From Macrostomum lignano (lineage: Eukaryota): DNA of 64,000 nt. Below the pieces are notes generated by a model. It was not told where the DNA came from, did no database searches, and was given only the letters and a program-made list of their open reading frames with translations. The DNA lies in NCBI GenBank assembly GCA_002269645.1, contig NIVC01001624.1:1-64000 (forward strand). Reading direction: 5' to 3'. Made by a program: the position numbers and the translations under genes. The first letter of the stretch is position 1; each line of letters begins with the position of its first letter. This document shows positions 1-28,255 of this stretch, one piece after another.

Positions 1-723
1 TTCATCAATTAAATAAGCTTGACAATCTCTCTTCCTCAGAAGAAGAATATCATCTCTGGGATCGCGGACCAAGCCTCCGTTGCAGATGGCCAATGCTTCT
101 TTAAAGAGCCGAAGCTTTACAAGAGCTTCCGACAGAATTCGATAGAATTTACCGGCTTTGGTCCAGCTGGATTGCATCTTCCGCATCTTCACGGGCCAGG
201 TTAAATTTGGATAGTCTGAGCTCGCACAGAGCTCGGTTTGAGTACAAAATGGCCAAATTTGCATTGATTCTGATGGCTTTTGTGTAGCAGTCCATGGCAT
301 CCGCCCATCGCTTATTTCCATAATGCTTGTTCCCTCGACCTTCAGCTTCTCCCAGTCTTCGCCAGAAACGCCAGCAAACTTCAATATTTCTCTTCTGCAG
401 TCGCTCAGCCCCATCAACTCCGCCAGCTTTAGAAAGCACTCGATATCATGCTCGAACCGGTTTGCATCGAAATCGTGGTGAGAATACTGGTTCCTAACGG
501 CCCTGGCTCTCTCCAAGGATCCACGCAGTTGTCTCTGAACAGCCGGGTCAGGAAAGAGTTTCTGCAGCTCATCTACAATCATTTTTAGCGAGTTGTTGAA
601 ATCCAGAGTGGTATTCAGTCCCAAGGCCGTCTTGAGTATCTGATTCATGCCGTGGGTGAGCAGCGAGACTGCAAACTGGATTTTCGATGTGGCTTCGGCA
701 CTCTCCATTGGAGCTGCAGCCAT
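1..723 (-). CDS. HEPN (Swt1/DZIP3-like, RNxxxH) + TPR protein, 3'-truncated by the window edge; two compensating frame disruptions (possible pseudogene or consensus error)
   Basis: Manual translation from ATG 723: MAAAPMESAEATSKIQFAVSLLTHGMNQILKTALGLNTTLDFNNSLKMIVDELQKLFPDPAVQRQLRGSLERARAVRNQYSHHDFD...EDWEKLKVEG. The RxxxxH motif is at 478-495. A TPR (GNKHYGNKRWADAMDCYTKAI...LYSNRALCELRLSKFNLAREDAEDAIQLD) follows after a 1-nt loss at about 330, then returns at about 152 to KFYRILSEALVKLRLFKEALAICNGGL. The first frame is open to position 1, so it is absent from the ORF track. Confidence 0.75.
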   Translation of the reverse strand, partial: MAAAPMESAEATSKIQFAVSLLTHGMNQILKTALGLNTTLDFNNSLKMIVDELQKLFPDPAVQRQLRGSLERARAVRNQYSHHDFDANRFEHDIECFLKLAELMGLSDCRREILKFAGVSGEDWEKLKVEGTSIMEISDGRMPWTATQKPSESMQIWPFCTQTELCASSDYPNLTWPVKMRKMQSSWTKAGKFYRILSEALVKLRLFKEALAICNGGLVRDPRDDILLLRKRDCQAYLIDE

Positions 724-1046
724 TGTATTGCAGGCGGATTCTGGAATTTGAAACGGAAGGTTGAATTTTTGGAAGAAAAGGCACGTCGAAACATAGTCCT
801 AAGGGAACCGAGTAGATGGTCAAGCAAGCAATGATACTATTGCCCACAAGCTTTTTTCTTCTGTTTCTGCTTGAGTAAATGGGTTTGGAGTGCCAGCGTG
901 GGGTCTCGCAGAGGGGAGACGGTCACTTAAGCAACTGGCAACTGTCCCTGGACTGAACAGCCGTATGCAGCCTTCAGATGTAAGACGCAATAGCTGCGGC
1001 TGAGCTGTCGGTTGCACATCTGGCCCATTGAGGCTAGTGAAATCAA

Positions 1047-1056
1047 TTACTATTAC

Positions 1057-1105
<49 letters not shown>

Positions 1106-1190
1106 TATTATTATTATATACTATTACTATTATTAATATTAATAATATTATTATTATTGTTAATATTCTTTTTATTATTATTAATATTGG
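1047..1190. repeat. (TAT)n microsatellite, attached to a SINE/LINE-like 3' tail
   Basis: Direct reading of tattattat... The preceding 987-1049 matches the SINE tail at 54900-54960. Confidence 0.95.
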
Positions 1191-1639
1191 CGTTACACGC
1201 CTCGAGTATTATCAAAAGCGCTGACTGGGTAACATCCGGAGCCGGGTCTTGACCAGATCCGTCAGACAGACGGATATCAATGGTAATTAAAGCTGTCAAA
1301 ATTAGATTGGGGTGCACTTAAATCGAAATGGAGGGCCGCCAGGAATCTAATGACCTAAATATAGGAATGCTTGCATTAGGCAGGAAATAAGTCAGGACAC
1401 AATCGGAGTTCGAGGCCATCAGCTTGTCTGTAAGTCGGTCTGTATTGTATACGAATAGAGATCAGTATACAGAAGCAAATTTGGGGCAATTTGGGCAGCA
1501 AAGCCATTCAGTCAGTAGCACAAGTAAAAACGGAAGCTTTGATATCGTTAAAAATCGATGTACAATAAAAAATCTGAAAGTGTATAGCTCGTTCAACGTT
1601 AATCATCATTAAGTAGACAAATGTTTGTATCAACATTAA

Positions 1640-2090
1640 GAAAAAGTAAAAAAATTGAAGATCAAATCACCATTAAAATCAGCGTCGACATCCAAAAACG
1701 GAAGTTTCTTCCCTCCAATCTCAACGGTACTAGTAAATTGGATATTTTTATGTGAGTAGAGCTTAAAGAATTTAGAAATTAAAGAAGTGTTGGCAATGAC
1801 TATCAAGAACAGCAAAGGTTTCGTCAGCATTGCACTTGCAACAACAAGGAGCGCAGTCAAGAGCCATTCATTCTTTATTATCTGTATGCGATGTAGGCGA
1901 TGTAGGTGTCTTCAAACACAAAAATGCCTGAGGTAGAAAAGCTAAGGAGTTTCTTGCATGCCGCTTTAAGAAGCGCTTCAGATGCACTATATTTCACCAT
2001 TTTTGTCGGGGCAAGATGCACGAAAATCCCGTGTGAGACATAGTCTAGCCAAGCGAGGGGGTAATTAAGGCTTAGCATTACCGGCCTGAT
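1640..2090 (-). mobile_element. Degenerate Penelope-like retroelement RT fragment
   Basis: HKNIQFTSTVEIGGKKLPFLDV resembles the Penelope RT motif HxxIxFTxExExxxxLPFLDV. Upstream frames are degraded. Confidence 0.55.
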
Positions 2091-2629
2091 CTTGTAGAAT
2101 TTATTGTATTGCTACTGTTATACGTGATTGCGTTAACTGACCCTTACGAGTACATATAAACGTAGTGAACGTTCACAAGATGGTTCCAAAATCATGTCAC
2201 GCTCAGTCTACGCGTAACCCAAGATGGTGATATCCGTGCAAAGCAACGGAGCACTTGCAGTGGCTTGGTTGTGCACAAAGGAAATATACTTAGACTCGAT
2301 CCAAAAGGGTGGGTGAGCATCAAGCCACACTCGTGTGTATAGTAAACTGCTTCCCACGCAATTTTCAGTGACATCATTCAGTGACATTTAGTACCCAAAA
2401 ATTTCTGCGCATTAAAAGCAAAGTAAAAAATATCTTCAAAATGTTGGAAATTTAGAGACAATACAAAAATCACCAATAATTGAATAATCAGCTACAGCTC
2501 ATATTACTGTTATACTGTGGTAATACTTTTTATCAAGACGAACTTTACATACATAGTTGAGAAAAATATTGTTTAAAAAATCCGTGAGCCCTCGAAGAAG
2601 CAAATTGAGTAGCAATCAAGCCTCATTTA

Positions 2630-4125
2630 TTAATCGTTTAAACTTTTGAGGCTTTCAAACTTTTCCTCATCAGCAGCCTCGCCTCTCGCCAAGCCTGCCT
2701 TCTGGTCCCGCACCAGCTGCTCCATCAGTCTTAAGCCTTCTTGCGCATGCTTCTGTAGCTCCAGTTTCAGGCAAATGTGATATACAGTCTCCAACTCCAT
2801 AAACTCTGCGTCCTCAAAATCCTCACGCAGCTCCTTCAGCCACCTCTCCACAAAGAGTGCACCCAGGAGAGGCTGGGTCTCAAACACTAGGCTCCACCAC
2901 AGGCAGCGGAAATTGATGTAAAGGTGAGAGGACTGGCCGGATGATTTCACCGCGATGAGGTGTCTTGTTGAATGCGGCAGGAAGTCAAACTTCAACGCCG
3001 GGTTATTGGGCTCCCAGGCAAAGCAGAATCTCCATGCAAAGTTATGTTTCGGAAATTCCCGAAAAAATTCATCCCAAGAGATGGAGTCCGTGGCATCCCA
3101 GCCACTCTGCACGGGGTGGTGAGTAAAAGTACTCACCAGTTTCTTAGCCTCCGCTTCATTTCCGACCTTCAGTTCAGCCATCACCATCAGGCACAGTTTG
3201 GCTGTATCGCAGCAGTTGTGTGGCAGGAGGCAGACCCGTTTAGCAAATGCGTTCTTGTCAAAACCATCCGCTTGCAGCTCAACAATAGCAGCAAAAACTA
3301 AGTTGTAGATTTGCGCTCCGTAGTGCACGTAAACTATGGTATCCACTTTCTGCTTCTCCACTTCAGCCAAGGAGAGACACGGCGTCAGCGGCAAAAGGGT
3401 GAATGGGTGGCAGTAGAATTTGCGGGACTGCAAAGGGCGCACGTGCGCGCTGATGGATTGATAGAGTTGATTCGCATCCTTCCTCAACTCGAACAGCTTC
3501 TCCGCTATCCTGCGTTTGGTCCCGAGATAATTTCCACCGATTCCAGCGTTCTTCACAAAAAGAGGGGCTTTCGGCATGAAGAAGTGAGGCATACAAATGT
3601 CAGGGTCCGGGCTGTCTGTCATGAACTGCAGCATCAGATTCAAGGACTCCTTTAACAGTGAGATCAGATTCTCAGGCTGCCAGACATGCTCGGTGAGTCT
3701 GTGCCTCTCCATGATGAAAAAAAGCAAAGTCTTTGCATTGTACGTCTTGAGGCCCTGCGTTCGCCATAGACGTGGCAGCAGCCTCTTGCAGACAAACTTG
3801 AGGAGAATGAAGAGCTGTCCTTGGATGGTATTCAGTTGCCGAATAATCTTCTTTTCGTGAAAACTGAAGCTGACTCTTAGATCGCTGTTTGAGTTGGGCC
3901 TGGTAGCCCTTACCAGGTGGACCTTCTCGTGGTCGCTGAGCAGTACTGAGCAGCGGTCTGCGCAGAACTCGCTGCAGCACTGAAAGGCATAGCAAGTGTC
4001 CATGGCAGGCCGCATGCCGCACGCATCGGCCGCAATGGCAGGCGAGCTGCCTGAAATGAGCGGTTGGACGAGTGGTTGGACGATGCATAAAGCTAGGACC
4101 TGCGCTGGAAGACGTATTCCCCTTG
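2630..4125 (-). CDS. Last exon of ANK-cGLR gene: Mab-21/cGAS-like C-terminal domain plus helical tail
   Basis: The ORF contains MDTCYAFQC (third acidic residue motif), LRVSFSFHEKKII, LLKFVCK, LKTYNAKTLLF, WQPENL and CMPHFFMPKAPLF, all Mab-21 hallmarks. Acceptor tttttag|CA at 4125 (alternative ttccag at 4104) is phase 1 and matches the upstream donor. Confidence 0.85.
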
Positions 4126-4834
4126 CTAAAAAATTTCCAACTGGGCATGCATGAGTCGTACTAAAACGTGATGAATTGGGCTTAAAAATAAACCTCGTAC
4201 ATTATTCTGAACCAGATTAAAAACAGGTCCTCCCTGCACTCTCCTTGCCACCTGTCGGTGTTGCCTGAAGCAGGAGTTTTCCCAACCTTGACGCTCGTGG
4301 CTTGAATGTGCTGAGTAGTATGTTTTTACTTCCATTTTCATAGCGGCCACCACCTCAACTGTTTTGTTTTTGGTCCCTGTTTGATCAGTGCGCCTGCCTA
4401 TGCTCACGGGTCTTTTCTACAAACTTCCTATCCTATATCTGGAAGTGCGGTAGAGATGAATTTACTCGCATACTTACTGCTTTGCAAGAGACAATGATAG
4501 CTAGGTACAATATAGAGCAGTCTTGATTGTTATGAGACAGTTTAAATTAGGACTGTACTATTCAGTCGATTGGAATTAGTTAATATACGAGGGTAGATAT
4601 CAGAACACGCACCAAAGTCAAACCTGTTTATTGAGATAAAATCATGTAAAAACACTTTATACCAGGGTAGAGGAAGAACCCTTCAATAAATAATACGGAT
4701 GTGCCATTATAGTCTAATGAGAAAAGAGATCTCAGGACTTTCGTCTTCTGTCGCAAAGTTGAAACAGTAAGATCACATGGATTTACCATCCAGCCCATCA
4801 CATATTAGGCAAATACAGTTCCTCAGAATCTCAC

Positions 4835-5231
4835 CAGCAGCAACCTCCAAGACCACGTGCCCCTCGTCGACCGAAAGCCGGTCTATACTTGCTCCGCTGC
4901 AAGCGCAACCTCCCTGCAGGTGCAGTGTCACGCCTGGAACGATGACAGTCCAGTCTATGTCGGAGTCAGCAGCGGTTCTGCCGTTTAGCTTTACCAAGTT
5001 GTTGCCCATCCGTCAGCGAAGCTGCCAGTCATCACAATTTCACTCTTTGTGAGCAGCTTCGCCAACGATTGAAGGAAATCAGCCATTCGCGTTTGAAATA
5101 CAACTCGTTGCTGGGTAAATCCTGCAGAGTTGAGCAGCTTATGCAGCGCAATGCTCAGTGTTTGATCTTCGTTCGGGTCATCTCTGAAAGTTTTTAGCGA
5201 TAATTTTTGCAGACTTAGCACGCTGCTCATG
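4835..5231 (-). CDS. Middle exon of ANK-cGLR gene: nucleotidyltransferase catalytic motif; 1-nt frameshift at about 5005
   Basis: EIVMTGSFADGW(G)NNLVKLNGRTAADSDIDWTV gives GS...DxD. The two halves are in different frames because TGG GGC reads TGGGC. Acceptor tctttag|C at 5231; donor GCT G|GTGAGA at 4835. Confidence 0.8.
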
Positions 5232-5809
5232 CTAAAGATTTAAGCACTGAATTAATTATGCTTAAAATTTACCCCGAATTTATATTTTTGCAGTGCACCT
5301 AAGCAGAGGGTAGTTGTCTTCTATTTTGGGTAGCGGTTCGATTAGCTTAGAGCCTTAGTTTAAGCGAATTAGATGCGTTCATTATTCTGCTACATTCATT
5401 GGCTTGTCAATGCCAATGTACGTTGGGCGGAGTAATATGGGCTTGAAACTATGGGGGTGGCTTGGCTGCATTTTTAACAGCTCTTCAGTAACTGCAATAG
5501 ATTTTACGCAGCCAATGCAATATTCATTTGCTGCAATATGCGAAATTAATGTAATACAATGAACGAAATTCTGTTAGCACTGTCTCAGCTTACCTTATTT
5601 GCTGCAAGTCGAATTTTATTTCAGGAATTGTTTCCGTTGGACACCTGAAAAGTACGTTAAAGTGCAAAAATTAAAATATTAAACAATTAGTCAGGCAGAA
5701 GCTGTGCCACATAAACGAATACTGAGAGGATTTCTTAACAAACCAATCGTAGTGAAGACCACAGAAACTGAAACACCCGAGGGCAGACATGCTTTCGCTT
5801 TAGACTCAC

Positions 5810-8389
5810 CCGTTTAGTTTCCATAGCAAAAAGGCATGAAAATCCGCGTGGCCGCCTTCAGAAGCCAGTTGAACGTCCCTGGGCTTCAATTCCGCCCCTG
5901 CGTCCATCAGGTACTTTGCTACTCGGACATGTCCGGCACGACAGGCCATTGAAAGAGCTGTGAATCCTTCGTTGTCTTGCGCGTTCACAGCGGCTGGATC
6001 AGCCAGTATGGCAAGGACGGCATGAACAATCTGGTCATGGCCGTGGCGGGCAGCAAGCATCAGAGCGGTGATTCCTTGAGCATCGCTGGAGTCAATGCGA
6101 GCCATGTATGGCAGCAGGGAAACGGCAAGGGACACGTGACCAGCTTCAATGCTTTTTAGCAGAGCAGCGTGGCGACCCTTCTCAGGATGCAGTTTGGCCA
6201 AAAGAGCCAGGTTCTCCGCTAGGCGCTTCACTGCATCTCCATTTAGCAGTCGCAGAAGTGCGGGGTCTGACATGCTCACTGGCGGCTTGCAACCCTGCAG
6301 CGTCGGGTCCTGGACATCGCTCAGCCCTCTCAGTATAACAGTCAGCGCTTCAGATCGAGCGTTTTCAATTGAGGTGCGAACGCCAATTTGCACGTACTGG
6401 TGTCGCAATTCAGGCGGAACAGTTTGCAGCAAGTCACTAAAAAAGTGCATTCGCCCATCCAGAATGGCATTAGCAACGGCTTCCTTGAGGCACTCAAGTT
6501 TTGCCCTTGAGTCATCCAGTGCAGCTAAGAGTGTAACAATGGTCGGCACATGGCTGGACAAGGCAGCCCGCGATACTGCAGCGCTGCAGCACTCAGCTCT
6601 GACAACGGGATCCGTGATCTCCTGTAGCAACTTTGTCACCAGCTCTGATCGACCATCAGCAGAGGCACAGATAGTGGCATCCTTGTAGGATTGTATTTTG
6701 GAATCAGGATTGGCGATGGCTGCAAGCAGCTGAGACAAAGACGATTCATGGCCTTTCCTTGCGGCGACACCTACAGCTTTAATGCAACAGCGATCTTTCA
6801 CTTGCTGATCAGTAATTGTGTGAAGCAACAGCGCCAAAGCTTCCTTTTGATCAGACATCGCAGCTCCCGTGATCCCCTTTCGGTAGCATTTATTCTTCAT
6901 CTCTGGATCGCTGACGGAATTGAGAAGCTCAGACAGAATCTCCACGTGACCTTCATTGGCAGCGACTAAAGTGGCTTCCTTGCAGCATCGATCTCTGAGA
7001 TTGGGATGGCTCGCTGTTTGCAGTAGGCGGGTTAGCAGTTCCCTCCAACCGTTTCTTGTGGCCGTCAACACGATATAATTATAGAGCCTTTCCTTACGTT
7101 TCGAGTCGGAAACAAGTTCAAGCGCGTCCGCAATTGTGTCCCTCCAGCTTTGCTTGCATCCATCCGCAATCACGATTTCGCAGCACTGGTCTTTGCACTC
7201 TGCATCCCTTACCGTTTTTGCCAGCTCATATGCCGTAGCAGGGTGTCCGCTGGACACAGATAGCCGAACCAAAGAGACGCATAGCACATGGACACAGATA
7301 GCCGAACCAAAGAGACGCATAGCACATGGACACAGATAGCCGAACCAAAGAGACGCATAGCACATGGACACAGATAGCCGAACCAAAGAGACGCATAGCA
7401 CATGGACACAGATAGCCGAACCAAAGAGACGCATAGCACATGGACACAGATAGCCGAACCAAAGAGACGCATAGCACATGGACACAGATAGCCGAACCAA
7501 AGAGACGCATAGCACATGGACACAGATAGCCGAACCAAAGAGACGCATAGCACATAGACACAGATAGCCGAACCAAAGAGACGCATAGCTTGTCTCTGGT
7601 TGTCGAGTCAGACACAGGAAGAAATCCAGCTAGCATCTCATGGCGTCCTGTTTTCGCTGCTTCCCAAAGGGCAGTTTTTTGCAATGAATCCTTGATGGCA
7701 CCATCTGAAACAGCTGCAATTAGTTCATCCGCAATTACCTTATGCCCGTTCTTTACTGCCTGACCGACTATTTCTTTAAAGCGCTGGTCTTGGACCGCGT
7801 TATGCCCAAAGCTTTGAAGAAGTTCAGAAACAATTTCGTTGTGGCCAAAAGTTGCAGCAGTTCGGATTCCTTCCCAGAATACCTCATTCCGCCTAGTCGC
7901 ATCCGCAGCAGCCTGAATCAATTCGGAGACGAGCTTCTTATGGCCCCGTGATGCGGCTCCATATGTGGCCAATCGGAGGCACTCGTTCTCAACTGGCGAG
8001 CCGCGAACAGCTTTGAGGATCTCCATAACAGCGGATTCTCTTCCGTTTCTCGCGAAGCACTCAACAGCGGATTGCCGGCACTGGTCCAAGACATCAGCAT
8101 CAGTTACTGCAGGTAGGCTTTCCTTTACAATCTCTTCGCGGTCATACACATTGGCAGTCTGAATCGCAGTTCTGCAGTAGCGATCTCTGAACTCGGAATC
8201 AGGTGCATATTTTAAAAGCTCGGAGACCATCTCCGCGTGCCCGGCTTTTGTGGAGATCTTGATAACTTTCTCCAGAGTCTGCTCCTGACCTGCCGAATTA
8301 GCGAGAACGGCCAAAAACTTTTTGACAGAATCAAAATTGCCATTCCGGGCTGCAGCTTCCAGTTGATCGGCCGGTTTCTCAGAACTCAT
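5810..8389 (-). CDS. Ankyrin-repeat exon (many degenerate ~34-aa repeats plus canonical ANKs) of ANK-cGLR gene, interrupted by a 38-bp VNTR
   Basis: ORFs 7226-8389 and 5806-7548 join into one frame if 8 extra 38-bp units are removed (DKLCVSLVRLSVSSGHPATAYEL). Canonical ANKs are GITALMLAARHGHDQIV and GFTALSMACRAGHVRVAKYLMDAGA. Ends AAC GG|GTGAGT, a phase-2 donor at 5810. Confidence 0.85.
7252..7589. repeat. 38-bp tandem repeat, 9 copies, inside the ankyrin coding exon
   Basis: Unit ggacacagatagccgaaccaaagagacgcatagcacat starts at 7252, 7290, 7328 and so on to 7556. Confidence 0.95.
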
Positions 8390-10574
8390 TGCTGCATAAC
8401 TCGCTGCTTTGATCTTTACAGCGCTGCTAATGCAAAAATTGAAAATGTATGTTTTGTCATTGTTATAGCCAAATTTTAAATGTTACAGGATTAAAAGTGA
8501 TTTTAAATTTTTTATAACTCTACAAAATAGTAAATTTTCAAAACCGTGCTCTTCTCCTTTGCCACGCTTGGTTGGTCCAATCTAAATAAAATCTCATGGT
8601 AAATCATGTTAGATATTTGAATCCTAAATTCTCTGATTACAAGAAATAGCAACTACTAATGAATATATGGTTTTAATTGAGAGATAGAAATAATTACATG
8701 CATCTAGGCCATGAAAGTTGACCAAATACAGTTTATCATTAAGAAAAAATTGTGGCACCAACCATTGCTAATAATAAATTGTAAAATAAAAAAATAGTTT
8801 CTAGAACTATGGCTCAGTGAGCAACAAGCAATAGAGACATATATATGGCTATTTAAATTATCTAACATGCAAAGCTACTTGTAAATTTTATTTCTGTTAT
8901 TTTTTATTTAAAACTGTGCTGACTTATAACTGCCCATGCCTTTTATGTGCTATTGTTTCCAAAGTTTCCCAAATAATATTTTTTATGATTTAATAAACTA
9001 TTAAACTATTAACTACTGATATTTTGACGTTACTATTTTATCAATTCAGTCCAGTTTCCAATGTTTTAACTGAGATAACATTATTTTTTGTGACAAAAAG
9101 TTTATTTACTTAAATCATTTAAAATAATTAAAATAATTAAAATTGAAATTGAAAATTCAAAAAATTTACACGGTTGCTACCAGTGTCCTACCACTCATAT
9201 TGTCTGAAAACATCCTTTCGTTGACAACAAACTTAATTAGTTTAAAAGCATAGTAAATTCATTTTTTCCTGTAAGTATAGTTGAAGGCCAGGAAAGGAAT
9301 TTTATTTCGTCTCAGTTTGTTATAATGAAATGCACCACCCCGCGACGTCCATGAGATCGCAACAATTAGAATTTTCTCATGAAGTTTTATAACTTAGCTT
9401 TGGTATTGTGATCGGATTCAATCTGAATTTGAATTCGATTAGTCCACTTCCTTTGCTTACTTACGTGGGTCCTTACGCTACCTGCATACACTTTATAATA
9501 GAGTCCTGGTGATGGATTACAGTAGTAGTACTTTAGTGTGACAGTGTGATTCGTAGAAGCGTGTATCGTATTTCTTTAGTTTCATATGCATACTGTACTA
9601 CTACTGAGTCTACTGTATTCTTTCATTTATTTTAACAATATTCGTACGTATTATTATCGCACTATAGTCTATAATTTTTACTGTTAATTGCTTTGTTTTT
9701 GTAGTCTCGTATGTATTTATTCTATTATTTGTATTTCATTCATATCGTTATTATTTCTCGTAAAAGTAGTTCTACCTATGTACATGTACTGACGTATGTT
9801 ATTCTTGCATGATATATTTTATCGATTAATTTGTACAGGTACATTAATTTGCGCGCCGCGTGGGGGTTGTTTGTCTGGGTTTTGGATTAAGGGTGTTGTT
9901 GTTATCTGTTTACCTTTAAATATATGCTTACACTACAGTCAGCAGCCGCTCTCGCCCTTCCCCTTGCTTCGCTTCTCGACCTAGGCTCGCTAACCCTTAG
10001 CTGTGACGCTGTCTGGCCTCCTTGCACCAACTCTTCCGCCGTCTACCTTGGCCCACCATTAATTAGCTAATCAACTGATCCAGCAATTTTAAGCAAAAGT
10101 CTAAGGGTTGAAGCGGCTTGCCGATCTGCTAACTAATCGTGAACTATCTAAATTAACCGCTACACAAATCCGTTTTATTCGCCTTATTCGTCACATTAGT
10201 ATGCATCATCACGAATGGGTGAATCGTCTCAAGTTAGGCTAAATTATAGCTACAATATCAGCCCGATCATCCATTTAAACCCTATGAAAGCACTCAGAAA
10301 TAACATGTTACGTCAGAATTCACATTTCAATGAGAGCATAAAGTCAATGACGTGAAAATTTGCTTTATTAAATAAGGTACATGTACATTTACGCGTGAAT
10401 TCAAAATAGTTAATGGTTAGTTAGTGAATAAAAAACAATTTTTTAAAGTCTGCATAAATAGATTGCGTTAGAATGCAGCGAATTGCAGAAATCCGTGATA
10501 TACAGGTACAGTAGAAGGCATGAGGGGGCTTTTGTTAGGCTAAAGGGGGCTTTTGGGACAAAATTTTTCACGTC

Positions 10575-14997: not shown

Positions 14998-17900
14998 TCA
15001 GTCGCTCCTGACCGCCGCCGAGTCCTCCTCGCCCACCTCCTCGATGCTGGCGATCTGCCTGACGTCCGCCTCCGCCCGGCTCCTCCACCGCTCCTTGTTG
15101 CTCGCTAGCAGCTCCAGTGGCCGCCAGGTCGCCTCATCTGGCGGCGTTGACTGCGGGGGCGGGGGCGGCGAAGTCGGCGGCTCCGGCGGCGGCTTCGCTT
15201 CGTCGGCGTTCTCGGGCTCCGCGGCCTCCTCGCTCTGCTGCTCGTCGATGTCGTCGCTGGCCTTCTTGCTGAGCTCCTGGACGCCGTTCAGCAGCTGCAG
15301 CAGGGTGCGGAAGCACGGCTCCACGATGTACTCGATGAAGCCTTCGGGAGGGATCGGACAGGTGAAAGTCATGGACAGCTGAACGCGCAAGGATGCCACG
15401 CTTCCAAACCGTACGAAATGGACTGGAGAACCTTTAAGCCTATAGCCGAAGCTAAAATCGGGTTTTTAGAGTTAAGCAGAGGTGGTCGCGGTTAGTACGC
15501 AGTTAAATGGGATCATTATTACATGTTCGACCCTCGAGGTGGCCGCAGTGAGCCCGCATTGCTGATCGGCAGGAGTTCCTGTGTTTCCAGTGTGCATTTG
15601 TCCTGAATTCACATCCTTCTACATAGTACCGAGGGCAAGAATATCGGTTTCAACAGCTACTCTCGCTTCCCTGGGCATCTCTTGAGGGCTTCCCTACCCC
15701 CTATCAATGATTCAGGAATTTGAGAAAGCCAGAAGCCGGAGCTGGAGATGCTCAGATACTTCCCCATAGCCCAGCCTCCTTGCGGGGTTGGGATGGATTT
15801 TTTTTTGAAAGAATGAATTGAAGAGCGGGGCTGCAGGGACTCCAGCCACAAGATCCTTGTCTGCCTGTCCGCTGCTTCCCATCCGCTGCTTCAAGGCGCT
15901 CTGCCCGGTGCTCACACGGCAGGAAAAGTGCAGGAATCCCCGCAGCTGCGCAGCCTGCGGAAGACAGCTGGGCCAATCTTCCCGTTCCCCAGCCAAGCTT
16001 TTATCTCGCCTCTCGATTCCCCTCCCCCACTCTGTCCCCCCGCCTCGCCCGCGAAGGCAGATCTCAGCCAGTTATTCAGTTGCCACAATTCGATAGCAGG
16101 TGTCCCCTCGCCTCGGTTTCCCGTCACCGCGTCGAGCTGAAATCGAATTATTCAGTTCTCTGTTCGACACGATTTGCGCTTCGCGAACTCTGATTTACTG
16201 ATCAGCTGAGCCTCTGCGTCCCCTGAGCGTCCTCTACTCAGCGAGCCAGGTGAGCAGTAAGGTCACTGAGTGATTGGGGGAGTGAGCAGGGAGGTGACTG
16301 AGTGATTGGGGGAGTGAGCAGGGAGGTCACTGAGTGATTGGGGGAGTGAGCAGGGAGGTGACTGAGTGATTGGGGGAGTGAGCAGGGAGGTGACTGAGTG
16401 ATTGGGGGGAGTGAGCAGGGTGACTGATCCAGTCTCTTTTTCTCTCTTATCTGCAAGCTTCAATCCAAAATTCCCAAGCCCCAGGCGCCATTCATTATCA
16501 TACAAAAATTTCATTCAAAGCGACGGCTCGCAGCCAGGAAATCCCTATTATGAAATCCCTCTGGGGACTGCGAGACTTGCGCGGACAATCTTAGGGGAGA
16601 ATTATCCTCATAACTGAAGGCAGCAGACCGGCTACCTCGATAAATTACTGTTGCTGGCTTCGAGAAAATTTCTCAGTTACGAGCTACGTCCCGAGTTCTC
16701 TAAGAATACCAGCTGCCTTCCGAAATGTCAATAATGTCATTGCCGTTACTGAGCAACCAGTCTCCACGGATGCTCTGATCCCCACGGATGCTCTGATCCC
16801 CACGGATGCTCTGATCCCCACGGATGCTCTGATCCCCACGGATGCTCTGATCCCCACGGATGCTCTGATCCCCACGGATGCTCTGATCCCCACGGATGCT
16901 CTGATCCCCACGGATGCTCTGATCCCCACGGATGCTCTGATCCCCACGGATGCTCTGATCCCCACGGATGCTCTGATCCCCACGGATGCTCTGATCCCCA
17001 CGGATGCTCTGATCCCCACGGATGCTCTGATCCCCACGGATGCTCTGATCCCCACGGATGCTCTGATCCCCACGGATGCTCTGATCCCCACGGATCCCCA
17101 CGGATGCTCTGATCCCCACGGATGCTCTGATCCCCACGGATGCTCTGATCCCCACGGATGCTCTGATCCCCACGGATGCTCTGATCCCCACGGATGCTCT
17201 GATCCCCACGGATGCTCTGATCCCCACGGATGCTCTGATCCCCACGGATGCTCTGATCCCCACGGATGCTCTGATCCTTTCCAGTCTCACCGACTTGCGA
17301 GGCAGCTATCATCGTCTTCTCCCGGTCGCACAGCGGGCTGCACTGCATCCCCAGCTGCTTCTCCTTGTCGCCCTGGGCAAAGAACTCCTCGCTGAGCAGG
17401 TGCGTCCAGCGCTCGTGCAGCGACCAGCCCTTGGCGGGGTGGCTGATGTCGGCCGAGTGCAGGATGTAGGACAGAATTTCCACCCGGGGCAGGTTCTCCG
17501 GACACAGGCTGCCCTCCTTCATGGCGGACACCTGGGCAAAGTGGGTGGACATGTCCGTGGCCAGCACCATGTCGATGACCATCGAGCGGAACTGACGGAA
17601 CTCCACGTGGCCCATGTTCTGCAGGATGTTGCACCTGCGGGGTAATTGGTTGTGGACTCGTTGCCAAGCGAAGCTGGTGCCGCAACAAAATCTGCTGCTA
17701 TGTTTCTTTAGTTTTTCTGGCAACGAGCTGCTGACGCTACAGGCGCCCTACTGGCGCGAGGACAGGGGCGCTCTCAGCGTCTGCCCACATTCTGTCGGCG
17801 GCATGACCGATGTTCACGCCTTTGAACTGGTGTGTTGCAGCGTGCAACACCGGCTTGACGGACCTCCAGCTCATCCAGCTCCTCCAGCCCCTTCAGCCCC

Positions 17901-19536
17901 TTCAGCCCCTTCAGCTCCTTCAGCTCCTTCAGCCCCTTAAACTCCTTCAACTCCTTCAGCCCCTTCAGCCCCTTCAGCTCCTTTAGCTCCTTCAGCCTCT
18001 TCAGCCCCTTCAGCCCCTTCAGCCCCTTCAGCTCCTTCAGCTCCTTCAGCCCCTTCAGCCCCTTCAGCCCCTTCAGCCCATTCAGCCCCTTCAGCCCCTT
18101 AAACTCCTTCAACTCCTTCAGCCCCTTCAGCCCCTTCAGCCCCTTAAACTCCTTCAACTCCTTCAGCCCCTTCAGCCCCTTCAGCCCCTTCAGCCCCTTC
18201 AGCCCCTTCAGCCCCTTCAGCCCATTCAGCCCCTTAAACTCCTTCAACTCCTTCAGCCCCTTCAGCCCCTTCAGCCCCTTCAGCCCCTTCAGCCCCTTCA
18301 GCCCCTTCAGCCCATTCAGCCCCTTAAACTCCTTAAACTCCTTCAGCCCCTTCAGCCCCTTCAGCCCCTTCAGCCCCTTCAGCCCCTTCAGCCCTTTCAA
18401 CACCTTTAGTACCTTCCCAGAAAGAAAAGTCAGCGTTAATTCCATTTGGAAGCACTACTTTTGATCACAACTCACCTTGAGTCTGCATCCAGCAGCCTCT
18501 TGAACACGGCGCTGACGTGGTGATTCTCCAGCACGGCCTTGTCGTTGTACACCACGGCCAACTGGGAGGCCGTCTGCACGTGGAAGCCGTTGGTGGTCCC
18601 GGTGTGCTCGAAGTCGTGCACCAGCGCGGCGAACAGCAGGCTGAAGACCTCCAAGTCGCTCAGCCAGCCCGTCAGGCCGTGCTGCCGGACGATGTAGCAG
18701 CAGGTCTGCGCCACGTCCGCTGAGTGCGCGCAGTTGTGGTAGGGGTTGCCGTGCAGGCGGTAGCCCTCCTCCATCATGTCCAGGAAGGCCTCTAGCGCGG
18801 GCACCGATATGGAGAACTTCTCGATGAGGTCCAGACGCTGGAACAGGTGCAGCCCCATCGCCCTGACTGGCCGGCCGGAGCTCAGCTCGGACAGGCGGAA
18901 CACGTCGAAGTCCCACGAGGCGGCGCCCTGGTCGAGACAGGCGCGGACCTCCGCCGGCAGCGACACGCCGGGCGCAGCCAGGCTCCGGCGGCGGCGGAAC
19001 AGGCGGTCGATGTACACCCCGGTCTGGATCACCGTGGCCAGGCTGCGGAGGCGGCGTCGGCGGAACACGGCCTCGCTGGCTCTCCGGGTGAAAGTGAAGT
19101 TCAGCCACTCCTGCACCTTCTCCGGAACTTCCAGAGTGCCATCGGCGGAGCCCCCCGGCTTCCGGAACAGGTCCTCGTCGTCCTCCCGCCCGCGCGTGCG
19201 CTGCTGCACCGCGGACTCGAGAAGGCGGCCGGCCTCCGACAACGAGGCGACGATGTCGTCGCGGGTGAGCCTGTCTGCTGCCACCAGCTGCTTCAGCCGC
19301 GCCAGCTGCTGTGCGCAGGCCTGCAGCTCCGAGACGCAGCCCACGTCGCCACCGCCGACTCCACCGCCGACTCCACCGCCGACTCCACCGCCGACTCCAC
19401 CGCCGACTCCACCGCCGATTCCACAGCCGACTCCACCGCCGACTCCACCGCCGACTCCACCGCCGCCTCCGGCGCAGCTGCCTTGGGCACCGTCTGTCTG
19501 AGCTGGCGAATCCTGCCGCTCTGTCTGGTGTTCCAT
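14998..19536 (-). CDS. PDE1: Ca2+/calmodulin-dependent cyclic nucleotide phosphodiesterase 1; exons 18476-19536, 17291-17634, 14998-15341 (582 aa)
   Basis: PDE1 N-terminal motifs (VPEKVQEWLNFTFTRR, LRSLATVIQTGVYIDRLFRR) and catalytic motifs (YHNCAHSADV, VHDFEHTGTTN, LENHH, LATDM, LHSADISHP, EFFAQGDKE, SQVGFIEYIV). GT-AG junctions are phase-consistent. An alternative upstream start or exon is possible. Confidence 0.92.
16262..16425. repeat. 32-bp minisatellite, about 5 copies (PDE1 intron 2)
   Basis: Unit gagtgattgggggagtgagcagggaggt(g/c)act. Confidence 0.9.
16762..17278. repeat. 18-bp minisatellite next to the PDE1 exon 2 donor
   Basis: Unit ccccacggatgctctgat. Confidence 0.95.
17880..18400. 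repeat. 9-bp minisatellite (PDE1 intron 1)
   Basis: Unit cttcagccc / cttcagctc / cttaaactc. Confidence 0.95.
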
Positions 19537-21159
19537 TTTGACGCCTGCTGAGTGAGTTGCCGTGCTCAGCTCAGGCCGTGCTCCAGTGCGCTCCCACATC
19601 GCAGCTGGCAGGCCGTGTTTATGGCGGCCTGCAGTGCCTCCCTGCCCCCCCCCCCCTGCTCCGGCTCAATGCGATTGGCTCGCAGAGCACTGAGGTGGCA
19701 AACCGAGCGGCCCCCCTGCTATTATGGCCAAATACCTTTCATTTGGCCTGCCTGCTCAGCTGCTGCTGAGCTTTCAATGCTTGACGGGCTGACGGCTTGT
19801 GAGGCGGGGCGGGCGCCGCGGGGGCTCCCGCTGTCCCGGCTCTCCGGATCGCCTGCAGATCAGGAAATGGGATTGCGGCTCCGCGCTCTTGCCTCCACTG
19901 CCCCCTCCCGTCCCCTCAGCTACATGCCGCAGAGTTCCTTGCACACAGGCTGCAGAGGGGACGTCAGATTGATGAGACTCTGAGAGAACGACTCCAAGGC
20001 CTCTGCGCTAGACAAGAGCGAGGGAGCGAGCTGAGCAAGATAGAGGGCAAGGGGGTCTTTTGTGATTAATTAGGGGGGGGGGCGGACTTGCCATTGCCTG
20101 CGTGGCGACTCGAGCAGCAGCAGCTTTCTGAACTCGAGCTGAGACGCGGCGCCCACCTCGATTGCCGACTGCCCGGGAGTTCGCCAAAGAGCGGCCGCCG
20201 GAACACGAGCGGTCGGCCGCTAATTATATTGAGAGAAAGTCGTTTTTTGAACCCGAGATCCGGTCCCAGATCCGGTCCGAGACCTGACAAAGACAAAGAA
20301 AGAAATGCACACCTGTCAGTAATTATGGCTGGAAAATTCGGTTCTTCTTAATGAGTGCCGTAAAATTTTAGCACAGCATTGAGTTGTATTTCTCCAGCTG
20401 AGCAGCTGGGCGATGAGTTCTCGAGCAGAGAACTGGCGCGCAAGGGTTAGGAGGGAAAAGTTACAAGCGAAGCGAGGGTTTGCAGTTTAAAGCAAAGATT
20501 CGAAATATGGATGGCGGATCCCAGGTTTCCAGATTCGATACATCATCAGGCCCCGGGTGATCCGGGCTTCTGCATATCGGAGTTCCCGGCGGAGTAGCAA
20601 GGGGTTCCGAATAGCAAACTGCCGCCTTGCCGCTCTGCAGGAAAAGGCTTTGAAACAGTTTGTGGCTGAAGGTGAAGTAGCGATAGGAGACGGGGAGGCG
20701 AGGCTGCTGTGTCCAAGGGGGTGGCTCTGAGGTGACCGGGGAAGTCGCAGTGCCTGCTGGGCCATCCATCAGTCAGGCCGCTTCTTCGACTCTTCAGGTC
20801 AAATAAACAAATCTAGAGGCCAATCATGAGAATTTTCCCAAACACCGGCCTCTCTCCTTTATCTGTAATTGCAGCGTAGTGACGGCTGTTGGTTCCGGGG
20901 GGGGGAGTCCGTCAGATGCAATATTTATTCTTAAATACGGGGTCACGAGGGAAGAGTAGGGAGCTGCCTCTGCCTCGCTATCCAATGACCCTATTAACCG
21001 ATTGTGAAGAATTCAATTAACTCGCACACAGAATTTCTATTGACTTGTACGCTTATCTTCTGATGCCTAAAATTGCCTATAGACTTGTGCGTAGACTTAA
21101 GTACATCGCCAATTGGACACGTACACATGAGACTGGCTGAGACTTGCCCACGTTCTACT

Positions 21160-21732: not shown

Positions 21733-24700
21733 TCACTTGTACACGGGCACCGGCTTGAGCCCGGGCTCTGGCGGCGCGGCCACCTGCTTGGCGTGGGTCT
21801 CGCAGTACAGCTTGCCCTCGATGTAGAAGTAGCCGCAGTGCCGCAGCCCGACGCCGCACTTTGCGCACTTCAGGCACTCCGGGTGCATCGGCACGCTGCC
21901 CTGCACCCGCACGAAGACGCCTTTGATCATGTCACCGCAGGCGCCGCAGTGCATGGAAGCGCCGGCCAGGTTGGGCCGCGGAGTCGCCGGGTCCGCCACC
22001 GGCTGGTGCGCCGAACCGTCCGCCGATGCAGCCGAAGCCCCCGACGAAGCCGATGCCGCCAGCCGATGACCGCCACCGTCAGCGTCCTGACTGGCCGCAC
22101 GCAGGGTGCTGTCGAAGGTCGCCTGCACGAAGCCGCTGGCGTACAGGCCGGAGGGCGAGTTATAGTTGTTGTGGAACACCTGCTTGGTGCGCCCGCCCGG
22201 CGTGGTGGTCACCGTGCGGCCGATGTTGAAGGGCCGCGGGCTGTTGTTGAACCCGCCGCCGCCTGCGGCGTACCCGGGAGAAGATGGGCCCGCCGGCTGG
22301 GGGGAGCCGCTCGCCTGCAGATGGAGGGAGGCGGTACAGTCTGAGCTTTCAAATATTCTGGGGTTCTGGGATTTTGGGATTCTGGGATTTTTGGTTATTT
22401 GGGATTTTGGGAATCTGAGATTTTGGAATTCCGAGATTTCGGGATTCCTCGATTCTGGAACTCTGTGATATTTGATTCTGGGATTTTGGATTCTGGGATT
22501 TCGGAATTCTGGGATTTCGGGAGTCTGGGATTTCGGGATTCCAGGAAGTTGGAATTTTGGGAATCTGAAATTTTGGGAATCAGGGATTTTGGGAATCTAG
22601 GATTTTGAGAATCTGGGATTTTGGGAATCTGGGATTTTGGAAATCTAGGATTTCGGGATTCTGGGATTTTGGAAATCTAGGATTTCGGGATTCTGGGATT
22701 TTGGAAATCTAGGATTTCGGGATTCTGGGATTTTGGAAATCTAGGATTTCGGGATTCTGGGATTTTGGAAATCTAGGATTTCGGGATTCTGGGATTTTGG
22801 AAATCTAGGATTTCGGGATTCTGGGATTTTGGAAATCTAGGATTACGGGATTCTGGGATTTTGGAAATCTAGGATTTCGGGATTCTGGGATTTTGGAAAT
22901 CTAGGATTTCGGGATTCTGGGATTTTGGAAATCTAGGATTTCGGGATTCTGGGATTTTGGAAATCTAGGATTTCGGGATTCTGGGATTTTGGAAATCTAG
23001 GATTTCGGGATTCTGGGATTTTGGAAATCTAGGATTTCGGGATTCTGGGATTTTGGAAATCTAGGATTTCGGGATTCTGGGATTTTGGAAATCTAGGATT
23101 TCGGGATTCTGGGATTTTGGAAATCTAGGATTTCGGGATTCTGGGATTTTGGAAATCTAGGATTTCGGGATTCTGGGATTTTGGAAATCTAGGATTTCGG
23201 GATTCTGGGATTTTGGAAATCTAGGATTTCGGGATTCTGGGATGCTGAAATTTTGGAAGATAAAAATCTTAAATGCTGTGTCCCAGTGTTTCAAAATGGT
23301 CCTTGATGTTAAGATTTGGTTTCGATTCGTTCATCATGGCAAAGCGGAACCACAGATTGAAAAGCCGTGGAAATCTCCGCGGGTGGTCGAATCCCTCCTT
23401 GGGCTGCGATCTCCGGCTCTAAGCTTCCTCTGTGTCCAAGGCCGTATGCTTCACTTGTGCGCGTTTCAATGACATGCTCCTTCACTGGCACAAATAATTC
23501 ATACTTATTTCTCCTGTGTACTTATAATCTAGTTTAAATGCTGCCCAGCTACACTGCCGGGATGCCAATTCAATAAAAACCATCGGAATCTCGAAATGGC
23601 TGACGCTTACGCCCGAGCGCGCTAATGTCACACGCGCTTCATCAACCGCGGCCTTCCCCGAGAAGCAGGGCTTGGAAGATGTGAAAGCGATCTGCAAGGC
23701 GGTGCTGAGCTTCATTTTGCAGAGTCTGCAGCCGCACTTTGCCAGTTGCTGGGCGGGCGGGACTTCCATTCAGATTTCTAATTGAAGATGCGCCCGTCAA
23801 ATCCCCGGGGGGAAGGGGGGGCTGTGCGGTTCGAATTGGCCACGACCGCCTTCCCCTCTGCCCGGACAGAAGTGCGCGGACTGGCAGACAATGCGCGAAA
23901 TGTCAGGAGCAGCGGAAATGCCACTCAGCTGGAGCTGCGGGAGAAGAACTGAAGATCCGCCCTGCCACTTGCGGCCTTGCACTGCGATGGCCCTTGACTA
24001 AGTCTCGCGAGGTCTGGGGCTCGGGTTCTTGCTTACCAAGGGGCGCCAGCACCAAAGGGCGCCAGCACCAAGGGGCGCCAGCACCAAGGGGCGCCAGCAC
24101 CAAGGGGCGCCAGCACCAAAGAGCGCCAGCACCAAGGGGCGCCAGCACCAAAGGGCGCCAGCACCAAGGGGCGCCAGCACCAAAGGGCGCCAGCACCAAG
24201 GGGCGCCAGCACCAAGGGGCGCCAGCACCAAGGGGCGCCAGCACCAAGGGGCGCCAGCACCAAGGGGCGCCAGCACCAAGGGGCGCCAGCACCAAGGGGC
24301 GCCAGCACCCTTGCCAAGGCCAAGTCCTGCCTTCACCTCCTGGCTGCTTCCCTGCCCCTCTCCTCATAAGCTGCATTTACCCTCGGTACACTGTTGTAGG
24401 TTGCGCCTGCGGCAGCCGCCATTGCAGCTTGGCTTCGGTGCTGCTGCTGCTGAGGCGGAGGCGCCACCTGCTGCACCGCCGGCCGCCAAGTCGCGGTGGC
24501 AACGCCAGCCGCTCCATCGGCTCCGCCTCGCTGCACAAAGAATTCGACGCTGTTGCCGGAGCGGATGATCTCCATCTTGGCGGCCTCGTGCTGCATGGCC
24601 CCAGCTGGCGCGCCGTTGATGGCGAGCACCAGGTCGCCCGCGCGGAGGCCGCACCGCTCCGCCACCGAGCCGGCGGCGACGCTCTCAATGGTCAGCGGGG

Positions 24701-28099: not shown

Positions 28100-28255
28100 C
28101 ATTTTAGCGCCACAGGCACTCATTATTGGCGCCGCAGGCACTCATTTTAGCGTCGCAGGCACTCATTATTGGCGCCGCAGGCACTCATTTTAGCGCCACA
28201 GGCACTCATTATTGGCGCTTCAGGCACTCATTTTAGCGTCGCAGGCACTCATTTG
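28100..28255. repeat. ~21-bp alternating tandem repeat
   Basis: caggcactcattttagcg / caggcactcattattggcg units. Confidence 0.8.

Follow-up and report, generated by a model that had tools for sequence, protein, structure and literature searches.

A probable HEPN domain coupled to TPRs in a gene that adjoins a Mab21-like gene of Macrostomum lignano

Does a gene with a candidate HEPN RNase motif, lying beside a nucleotidyltransferase-type gene in the flatworm Macrostomum lignano, act with its neighbour in the manner of a bacterial sensor and its effector, or does it belong to a family with a life of its own? The question arises at the left edge of a 64,000-nucleotide stretch of contig NIVC01001624.1 (hereafter, the window), where an earlier note had described an N-terminal helical domain with an RxxxxH motif, followed by TPRs and located downstream of a cGLR gene, and had proposed that it is part of a second-messenger-gated RNase functionally linked to that cGLR. 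The explanation favoured here is that positions 1–723 are the start of a gene of a small eukaryotic HEPN-TPR-Sel1-MYND family that has no HEPN annotation in the records checked. Taken as a whole, that is, with the family, its mechanism, a damaged copy and an accidental adjacency all included, this explanation is regarded as rather probable.

Translation of the minus strand of the window from 723 to 1 yields a product beginning M-AAAPMES, in which both LDFNNSLKMI and the RxxxxH sequence RNQYSH are found in the N-terminal helical domain, just as they had been read before (Table 1). The gene is missing from the list of open reading frames, as the earlier note had pointed out, because frames that leave the window are not listed; it is truncated by the window edge, and its relatives go on for ~770 residues further. 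An acceptor-like site (ttccag), read from the sequence, is positioned 20 nt upstream of the ATG. Three TPRs do follow the HEPN domain, but TPR1 and TPR2 are out of frame with it: the HEPN domain and TPR3 are encoded in frame 1 and TPR1-2 in frame 3, owing to two deletions, one of 1 nt and the other of 2 nt, which were located by DNA alignment to two intact M. lignano copies. Short introns were considered as the source of the frame changes and rejected, since the frames abut without a spacer and the alignment contains simple 1-nt and 2-nt gaps. Frame 1 is open across all 241 codons despite both deletions, which, with TPR1-2 in frame 3, means that in the product as written TPR1-2 would be replaced by a scrambled segment of ~60 residues.

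Table 1. Positions of the features in the window (aa, residues of the HEPN-TPR product).
Feature	Position	Strand	Remarks
HEPN-TPR gene, 5′ part	1..723	-	241 codons, single exon; ATG 721-723; leaves window at left end
N-terminal helical domain, probable Swt1-clade HEPN	331..723	-	aa 1-131 (~125 aa)
LDFNNSLKMI	577-606	-	aa 40-49; from translation
Near-invariant D41-F42	598-603	-	
RNQYSH, candidate Rx4H catalytic motif	478-495	-	aa 77-82; R77-N-Q-Y-S-H82
1-nt deletion vs intact M. lignano copies	331..332	-	GAGGG-AAC; frame 1 to TPR frame
TPR1-TPR2	~155..331	-	NKHYGNKRW...AIQLDQS; frame 3 only, out of phase with start codon
2-nt deletion vs intact copies	151..152	-	CCGG--TAAATTC; reading back in frame 1
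TPR3 and following linker	1..150	-	frame 1 (KFYRILSEALVKLRLFKEAL...)
Intergenic spacer, 1,906 nt	724..2629	.	(ATT)n-rich microsatellite ~1048-1190
Mab21-like (cGLR-like) gene	2630..5230	-	exon 5230-4835, intron 4051-4834, exon 4050-2630
1-nt deletion in Mab21-like exon	~5006	-	directly after GSFADGW
Ankyrin-repeat exons	5806..8389	-	end in G/GTGAGT donor

A search of 1.84 billion representative proteins identified 19 relatives of the HEPN-TPR gene, and 20 family members were compared. Full-length relatives are ~1,000 aa long and contain a HEPN domain, three TPRs, Sel1 repeats and a MYND finger. The best relative, M. lignano PAA88107.1 (P0001, 1015 aa), is 53% identical in the N-terminal domain (E=1e-32) and 62% identical in the TPRs; the HEPN region, TPRs and Sel1 repeats are present in P0001, P0004 and P0006 (Pfam, E down to 7e-37), zf-MYND was detected in P0001 and P0004 (E=3e-10), and the frame-corrected window sequence matches TPR_1 (E=1e-8) and TPR_2 (E=6e-8). 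The closest PDB matches of the three-TPR module are the TPRs of Hsp70/Hsp90 co-chaperones, namely STIP1/Hop (E=3e-22), SPAG1, RPAP3, CHIP and PP5, with E-values as far as 2e-11; when the module is aligned to TPR1 of Hop, four positions of the EEVD carboxylate clamp (Lys, Asn, Asn and Lys) appear to be matched, and the clamp Arg is offset by one. The known members come from the flatworm Macrostomum, the oomycete Aphanomyces and metagenome eukaryotes, and the single-exon flatworm gene is 42–45% identical to the oomycete gene. UniProt names the proteins of this family only “MYND-type domain-containing”, their precomputed Pfam lists include no HEPN, and the identifiers of the M. lignano genes gave no match in the literature. 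Neither the HEPN-TPR gene nor the Mab21-like gene has a paralogue elsewhere in the 64-kb window. A word-indexed homology search returned nothing for the N-terminal domain alone and only a distant short subfamily for the family alignment; this search missed P0001, and that index is therefore unreliable for the HEPN-TPR family.

The identification of the N-terminal domain as a HEPN was evaluated by profile comparison, motif conservation and fold prediction. The window domain scores 13.7–15 bits (E=0.03–0.08) against Pfam HEPN_Swt1 (PF18731), below the cut-off of 27.5, but no family other than HEPN_Swt1 recurs among the relatives, where it matches 12 of the 20 members (best E=2e-6). With 29.3 bits against the same cut-off, P0011 is the sole member above the curated threshold, and in the search of 1.84 billion proteins it was found with the window sequence at E=7e-8; the link to HEPN thus holds by transitivity. 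The Arg and His of the motif fall at the same HEPN_Swt1 profile positions, ~87 and ~92, in five separate matches, in one register. A DZIP3-like identity, which had been suggested for comparison beside the Swt1-like one, was rejected, because at E<=1 no member among the 20 gave a match to the DZIP3 HEPN profile. About 0.3 RxxxxH motifs are expected by chance per 241 aa (our own estimate), so that the motif alone is within chance and its significance rests on the conservation of R77 and H82: among the 20 members, A73 and R77 are invariant, conservation reaches 90% or more at D41, F42, R72, H82 and Q83, H82 is kept in 19, and every member has N, H or D directly after the motif Arg. The five M. 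lignano copies, the closest relatives, carry R-D-R-H-S-R, in which the motif His is replaced by Arg, so that catalysis is not conserved throughout the family.

An AlphaFold2 (AF2) model of the N-terminal domain computed with the family alignment reached a pLDDT of 88.6 and consists of helices at residues 3–34, 42–56, 60–81, 87–103 and 107–117; the single-sequence AF2 model was useless (pLDDT 53). R77 is predicted to fall within the final turn of helix 3, H82 to be the first residue of the loop to helix 4, and D41 to cap helix 2. [quoted passage not shown] A Foldseek search of the PDB gave generic helical bundles (best E 1.9, TM <=0.37) with no HEPN in the top 50, and a Foldseek search of BFVD likewise gave no significant match; as Foldseek returned nothing significant at all, the result counts only weakly against a HEPN fold in a domain so short and all-helical. 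Sequence searches of the PDB with the domain and the family profile produced only noise (Pizza designer proteins, GGDEF, prenyl synthase) and no HEPN protein, and PADLOC gave weak matches to Cas13-type HEPN models. Judged by profiles and not by fold search, the N-terminal domain is probably a HEPN of the Swt1 clade, which supports the HEPN call of the earlier note.

The family shares with the Swt1-like clade (PF18731; the Abi2/Swt1 group of PMC3710099) the R-N-x3-H pattern, a polar residue after the Arg and the position at the end of helix 3, as well as a patchy eukaryotic distribution and local copy-number expansion. Active eukaryotic versions of this clade comprise the Ava_2192-like solos in Daphnia, Naegleria and dictyostelids, and CXorf38 (Anantharaman et al., 2013, PMC3710099). 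In contrast to these proteins and to Swt1 itself, the HEPN-TPR family lacks the PIN domain of Swt1, the AAA+ ATPase of Ava_2192 and the NACHT, CARD and dsRBD of the CXorf38 group, and the combination of HEPN with TPR, Sel1 and MYND is missing from the architecture table of PMC3710099. Fusions of HEPN and TPR in animals have already been described in the DZIP3/hRUL138-like proteins and C6orf70 (ERMARD) (PMC3710099); the HEPN-TPR family differs from both in having no RING, NACHT or death-fold domains.

Beyond what the data show, namely the domain content, the family, the frameshifts and the absence of a conserved adjacency, we infer that the HEPN domain would act as a metal-independent endoribonuclease, or at least as an RNA-binding module, probably as a dimer like other HEPNs, and that the protein-interaction modules would govern the place and time of its action. 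The TPRs could dock on chaperone C-termini, the Sel1 repeats and the MYND finger could dock on other partners, and a nucleotide second messenger would have no part in this mechanism, which would be independent of the Mab21-like gene. Sacsin likewise combines a HEPN with Hsp70/Hsp90-linked modules; the likeness is one of modules, and the architecture of sacsin differs in that the HEPN is C-terminal and is accompanied by a J domain and Hsp90-like repeats. If the assignment holds, the eukaryotic HEPNs gain a small family whose putative RNase is joined to TPRs of the chaperone type, to Sel1 repeats and to a MYND finger. This raises the questions of whether the Hsp70/Hsp90 system is linked with RNA cleavage and of what causes the 42–45% identity between a single-exon flatworm gene and an oomycete gene.

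The window copy itself may be a recently damaged copy, a compensated frameshift or the outcome of indel errors in the assembly. It is possible, if somewhat unlikely, that this repeat-rich region is decaying, that both of its genes have become dead pseudogenes and that nothing functional lies at 1–723, a reading that is compatible with the family assignment and hence not a strict alternative to it. Three frame-disrupting deletions occur in ~2.5 kb of coding sequence in the two genes together, an exact look-up of the 461-aa Mab21 open reading frame found no record, and word-based searches with the HEPN domain and the Mab21 exon found no identical or near-identical protein. Against this, the two deletions in the HEPN-TPR gene total 3 nt and restore the frame, and the 60 shifted codons contain no stop, whereas just 3–11% of 60-codon windows are open in the shifted frames of homologous coding sequences. 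The out-of-frame TPR DNA is still highly conserved, which indicates that any inactivation is very recent, and two of the three deletions fit, in our own reading, the A-run undercalls expected in long-read assemblies.

It is unlikely that the N-terminal domain is a HEPN-derived or HEPN-like bundle devoid of nuclease activity that serves as a binding or regulatory module of a TPR/Sel1/MYND scaffold. The change of the motif His to Arg in the M. lignano copies would fit such a role, as would the absence of a Foldseek match to any HEPN nuclease and the fact that the remainder of the protein consists of protein-interaction repeats only; moreover, the HEPN of Swt1 proper has been described as probably inactive (PMC3710099). 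On the other hand, the invariant R77, the retention of H82 and the polar N, H or D after the Arg form the pattern typical of active HEPNs (PMC3710099), and a near-invariant Asp is placed where the auxiliary acidic residue of HEPNs resides.

The neighbour that had been called a cGLR is a Mab21-like gene whose product keeps an NTase-type motif, GS...D-I-D, that is invariant among the paralogues. Mab-21_C is the only domain detected in the protein and is borderline (23.2 bits against a cut-off of 24.1), a deletion falls between the GS and DID motifs, and no third catalytic acid was recognised. The gene is probably an ankyrin-Mab21 fusion, as the ankyrin-repeat exons farther upstream are probably its 5′ part by comparison with the Ank+Mab-21 fusion paralogues of M. 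lignano. All homologues found for the Mab21-like protein are M. lignano proteins (36–60% identity), and a PDB sequence search with it gave no cGAS and no cGLR; any synthesis of cyclic nucleotides by proteins of this divergent Mab21 clade is putative. A literature search on cGLRs in flatworms gave, among the matches listed, only general Macrostomum papers, and cGLRs were mentioned in none of them.

The two genes are co-oriented, with the HEPN-TPR gene 1.9 kb downstream of the Mab21-like stop codon as the earlier note had stated, and an AATAAA (read from the sequence) overlaps that stop codon and suggests that the Mab21-like gene has a 3′ end of its own. The pairing did not recur at the related loci examined. 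With flanks of up to 10 kb on each side, a HEPN-TPR gene was found at none of six M. lignano Ank-Mab21 paralogue loci (L005–L010) and a Mab21 gene at none of five HEPN-TPR loci (L001–L004 and L011), a sample of 11 loci of which five are on contigs too short for the full 10 kb on both sides; the oomycete homologue has unrelated glycosyltransferase and protease genes on its flanks. Both families do meet on one M. lignano contig, NIVC01001020.1, which carries two HEPN-TPR genes (~114.5–130.4 kb) and an Ank-Mab21 paralogue (168.3–171.6 kb) ~38 kb apart; under uniform scatter, such a placement is improbable by a rough estimate (p about 0.01–0.1), so that the two families may be loosely associated by region. 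Synteny between the window and NIVC01001020.1 was unsupported, since gene order and orientation differ and the Mab21 paralogue there, P0034, is the least similar of the NCBI paralogues (40%). Pfam and PADLOC analysis of the window fragment and of full-length P0001, P0004 and P0006 detected only TPR, Sel1, zf-MYND and weak HEPN matches, and no SAVED, CARF, STING or cNMP-binding domain.

These results make it highly improbable that the Mab21-like enzyme produces a nucleotide second messenger that activates the adjoining HEPN-TPR RNase, as a CBASS-like or type-III-CRISPR-like pair in an animal: the co-orientation across a short spacer, the invariant GS...DID motif, the RNQYSH kept in the window copy and the shared contig are outweighed by the missing ligand-sensing domain, the 0 of 11 loci, the family's presence in an oomycete, the frameshifts in both genes and the AATAAA. 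The likeness to CBASS and cGAS-STING pairs and to CARF-/SAVED-HEPN effectors (Csm6, Csx1) consists in an NTase-fold gene beside a HEPN-type gene; the window locus differs in being eukaryotic, in having neither a ligand-sensing domain nor conserved adjacency, and in its 1.9-kb spacer with its own poly(A) signal. The CBASS-like reading is accordingly unlikely, and the locus supplies no evidence that animals have a CBASS-like pair of cGLR and effector.

Macrostomum makes polycistronic, trans-spliced precursors (PMC5730564), so that co-transcription of co-oriented neighbours is possible in principle. There is a very slight chance that in macrostomid flatworms a lineage-expanded Ank-Mab21 gene and the HEPN-TPR-Sel1-MYND RNase gene form a co-transcribed, trans-spliced unit in which the RNase is activated by the NTase product, or by the NTase through its ankyrin repeats; the co-orientation at 1.9 kb, the common M. 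lignano contig and the unassigned linkers of the relatives, in which a sensor could hide, leave room for it. Such a unit, if real, would be the animal counterpart of the signalling to a HEPN effector that bacteria carry out in CBASS or type III CRISPR. According to the explanation favoured here, that of a HEPN-TPR-Sel1-MYND family acting independently, the adjacency to the ankyrin-Mab21 gene would be a local accident in a repeat-rich, duplication-prone genome and not a conserved pairing. Satellites of the window are common to M. lignano contigs, at 85–92% identity.

Direct translation of the minus strand at 1–723 yields 241 open codons beginning MAAAPMESAEATSKIQFAVSLL..., in which LDFNNSLKMI occupies residues 40–49 and RNQYSH residues 77–82. 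The two motifs and the TPRs described in the earlier note are therefore real, but frame breaks interrupt the coding sequence and the end of the window cuts the gene short. Frame 1 encodes the N-terminal domain and TPR3 (KFYRILSEALVKLRLFKEAL...), and frame 3 encodes TPR1-2 (NKHYGNKRWADAMDCYTKAI...LYSNRALCELRLSKFNLAREDAEDAIQLDQS); in the frame-corrected sequence, TPR_1 (E=1e-8) and TPR_2 (E=6e-8) are both significant. Gaps were placed by DNA alignment with two intact copies from M. lignano (Table). Because the 1-nt and 2-nt deletions total 3 nt, the frame is back in register downstream, and the shifted stretch between them comprises 60 scrambled, stop-free codons; in shifted frames of the homologous coding sequence, only 3–11% of 60-codon windows are stop-free. 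The out-of-frame TPR segment is still highly conserved in DNA, which indicates either that the frames were broken recently or that the assembly is in error here. Three frame-disrupting deletions fall in two adjacent genes (two within 151–332 and one at ~5006); undercalling of A-runs is compatible with two of the three, and incompatible with the 2-nt deletion. The deletions in the HEPN-TPR and Mab21-like genes may thus reflect pseudogenes, a compensated frameshift or assembly error. Since the M. lignano relatives are single ORFs of ~3 kb, the window edge cuts the gene after about one quarter of its length. The ORF track does miss it, as had been remarked, solely because ORFs leaving the window go unlisted.

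Table. Coordinates of features in the window
Feature	Position	Strand	Basis or remark
1-nt gap, HEPN-TPR gene	332/331	-	DNA alignment vs two intact M. lignano copies
2-nt gap, HEPN-TPR gene	152/151	-	DNA alignment vs two intact M. lignano copies
In-frame 6-nt gap	HEPN-TPR gene	-	DNA alignment vs two intact M. lignano copies
(ATT)n-rich microsatellite	1048–1190		spacer between Mab21-like and HEPN-TPR genes
ORF of Mab21-like gene	2630–4015, extended upstream to splice acceptor 4051/4050	-	joins the exon at 5230–4835
Upstream Mab21-like exon	5230–4835	-	joined via phase-1 intron
Ankyrin-repeat exons	5806–8389	-	end in consensus donor G|GTGAGT
38-bp minisatellite	7251–7589		8.9 copies, between two ankyrin ORFs
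PDE1-type 3′,5′-cyclic nucleotide phosphodiesterase	16746–19599	-	PDEase_I_N + PDEase_I
Minisatellite arrays	24035–24309; 25384–27195; 28098–28254; 31815–33774; 50716–51620		period 16–43 bp, up to 98 copies
Exon of KDM4/5-like histone demethylase	36022–37002	-	JmjN + JmjC

The N-terminal domain is probably a HEPN domain. With its 131 aa as query, HMMER run over all of 1.84 billion representative proteins recovered 19 relatives. The alignment of the resulting 20 N-domains shows no variation at A73 or R77 and at least 90% conservation at each of D41, F42, R72, H82 and Q83, and the residue following R77 is always N, H or D; RxxxxH is thus the most conserved feature. When the members were scanned against Pfam one by one, 12 of the 20 matched HEPN_Swt1 (best E=2e-6), other HEPN models (RiboL-PSP, Apea, Cthe2314, HepT and pEK499_p136) were matched sporadically, and no unrelated family recurred. 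One relative, P0011, scored 29.3 bits, above the curated cut-off of 27.5 bits, but the window domain alone scored only 13.7–15 bits, below it; in five separate HEPN_Swt1 matches the R and H of the motif fall at profile positions ~87 and ~92. The HEPN call of the earlier note, which had proposed a search with Swt1-like profiles, is supported at the profile level. Given the alignment as input, AF2 produced a confident model (pLDDT 88.6) with helices at residues 3–34, 42–56, 60–81, 87–103 and 107–117, in which R77 lies in the final turn of helix 3, H82 opens the next loop and D41 caps helix 2. [quoted passage not shown] Evidence against the assignment, besides the low score of the window domain, is that the family profile found no HEPN among PDB sequences, that Foldseek returned no significant match to the model in PDB or BFVD, and that the M. 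lignano copies lack the motif His. Catalytic competence of the window-type RxxxxH motif is only slightly more likely than not.

The best relatives are ~1,000 aa long: P0001 (M. lignano PAA88107.1; 1015 aa, 53% identity, E=1e-32), P0004 (1058 aa) and P0006 (927 aa), the last from the oomycete Aphanomyces stellatus; the remainder include metagenome proteins. In Pfam order they carry a three-TPR module, Sel1 repeats (E down to 7e-37) and further TPR-like repeats, and P0001 and P0004 end in a MYND finger. Databases label family members either “MYND-type domain-containing protein” or “TPR repeat protein”, and look-up and homology searches found no exact match to the window proteins. At least five copies of the P0001 type, mutually >90% identical, are spread over three M. 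lignano contigs as uninterrupted ORFs, and the HEPN-TPR coding DNA of the window is 73% identical to M. lignano DNA. This identity, the shared minisatellites and the lack of an exact protein match point to M. lignano itself (assembly GCA_002269645.1), with unannotated and possibly broken copies, or to a close congener as the source. The patchy phyletic spread makes transfer between eukaryotes possible. The genes are single-exon (L001 10004–13048; L011 10001–13045), against an M. lignano average of ~5 introns, and the M. lignano proteins are 42–45% identical to that of Aphanomyces stellatus (L003 3001–5901) in the Sel1-rich middle third and 38–39% at the two ends. All M. lignano copies, the closest relatives of the window gene, read R-D-R-H-S-R (L001 ~10240–10260; same region of L011), with Arg for the motif His, versus R-[N/H]-x3-H in the rest of the family.

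The nearest solved relatives of the TPR module are all Hsp70/Hsp90 co-chaperone TPRs, namely STIP1 (3e-22), SPAG1, RPAP3, CHIP, PP5 and SGT, and the Lys and Asn clamp positions align, which suggests that the module might dock on chaperone C-termini. Eukaryotic Swt1-clade HEPNs in the 2013 survey comprise Swt1 itself, described as inactive, the active Ava_2192-like solos, which are greatly expanded in Daphnia, and CXorf38, whose HEPN is partnered by NACHT, CARD or dsRBD; HEPN-TPR fusions were already described in the DZIP3 and C6orf70 families (PMC3710099). A Swt1-clade HEPN combined with co-chaperone-type TPRs, Sel1 and MYND is absent from the survey's table (PMC3710099). The window family is of the same kind with partners of its own, a new architecture for a known kind of protein and not a new kind of system.

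For the neighbouring Mab21-like gene, Mab-21_C is the only Pfam match (23.2 bits, cut-off 24.1; paralogues 25–29 bits), and a PDB sequence search found no cGAS or cGLR. The joined protein is in register with M. lignano paralogues and, only when the 1-nt deletion at ~5006 is bridged, contains the block MTGS-x-A-x-GW-x-N...NGRT-x-ADSDIDWT, invariant among them. All 12 homologues are from M. lignano (36–60% identity), most being ankyrin and Mab-21 fusions, and the ankyrin exons probably form one gene with the Mab21 exons as the N-terminal half of such a fusion. The neighbour is therefore a putative cGLR-like Mab21 nucleotidyltransferase of a lineage-specific expansion. At one M. lignano locus two Mab21-like copies stand in tandem (L006 34278–35621 and 36281–37570), indicating local tandem duplication.

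The CBASS-like sensor/effector pairing proposed for the two genes finds no support, there being neither conserved adjacency nor a detectable nucleotide-sensing domain: no SAVED, CARF, STING or cNMP-binding domain was found in the window fragment or full-length relatives. An AATAAA overlapping the Mab21-like stop codon also counts against a signalling pair. Co-transcription is possible, since Macrostomum produces polycistronic trans-spliced precursors (PMC5730564) and a ttccag resembling a splice acceptor precedes the HEPN-TPR ATG by 20 nt. Repeated co-occurrence of paralogues, which the earlier note had proposed to test, was absent at 11 loci within flanks of up to 10 kb per side: none of six M. 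lignano Ank-Mab21 paralogues (L005–L010) had a HEPN-TPR gene beside it in tblastn searches with full-length P0001 and P0004 and with the window domains, and no Mab21 homologue occurred at five HEPN-TPR loci (L001 and L011, M. lignano; L002, another assembly; L003, Aphanomyces; L004, metagenome). The Aphanomyces gene lies between GlcNAc-transferase and cysteine-protease genes. One M. lignano contig, NIVC01001020.1 (379 kb), holds both families: a head-to-head HEPN-TPR pair occupies ~114.5–130.4 kb, and P0034, an Ank-Mab21 paralogue, occupies 168.3–171.6 kb. A Na/Ca-exchanger gene lies between them, and gene order and orientation differ from the window. The paired genes (L011 1–257 and 10001–13045) are 9.7 kb apart, and the paralogue (L009 10001–13227) lies ~38 kb from them. 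The expected overlap is ~0.015 for seven located Mab21 loci, 1.68 Mb of HEPN-bearing contigs and a 764-Mb assembly; with only the located Mab21 loci counted, this is no more than a hint that the families may be loosely clustered regionally.

Elsewhere in the window, the PDE1-type gene, split by a repeat-filled intron holding 9-mer and 18-mer arrays, has the look of a common housekeeping-type gene and no obvious tie to the HEPN-TPR finding. The minisatellite arrays account for the swings in GC content and for long ORFs that stay open on the two strands alike; the translation of one array matches Pfam “Decapeptide” repeats. Two of them also occur in M. lignano contigs, at 85–92% identity, and their abundance matches the description of the M. 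lignano genome (PMC5730564).
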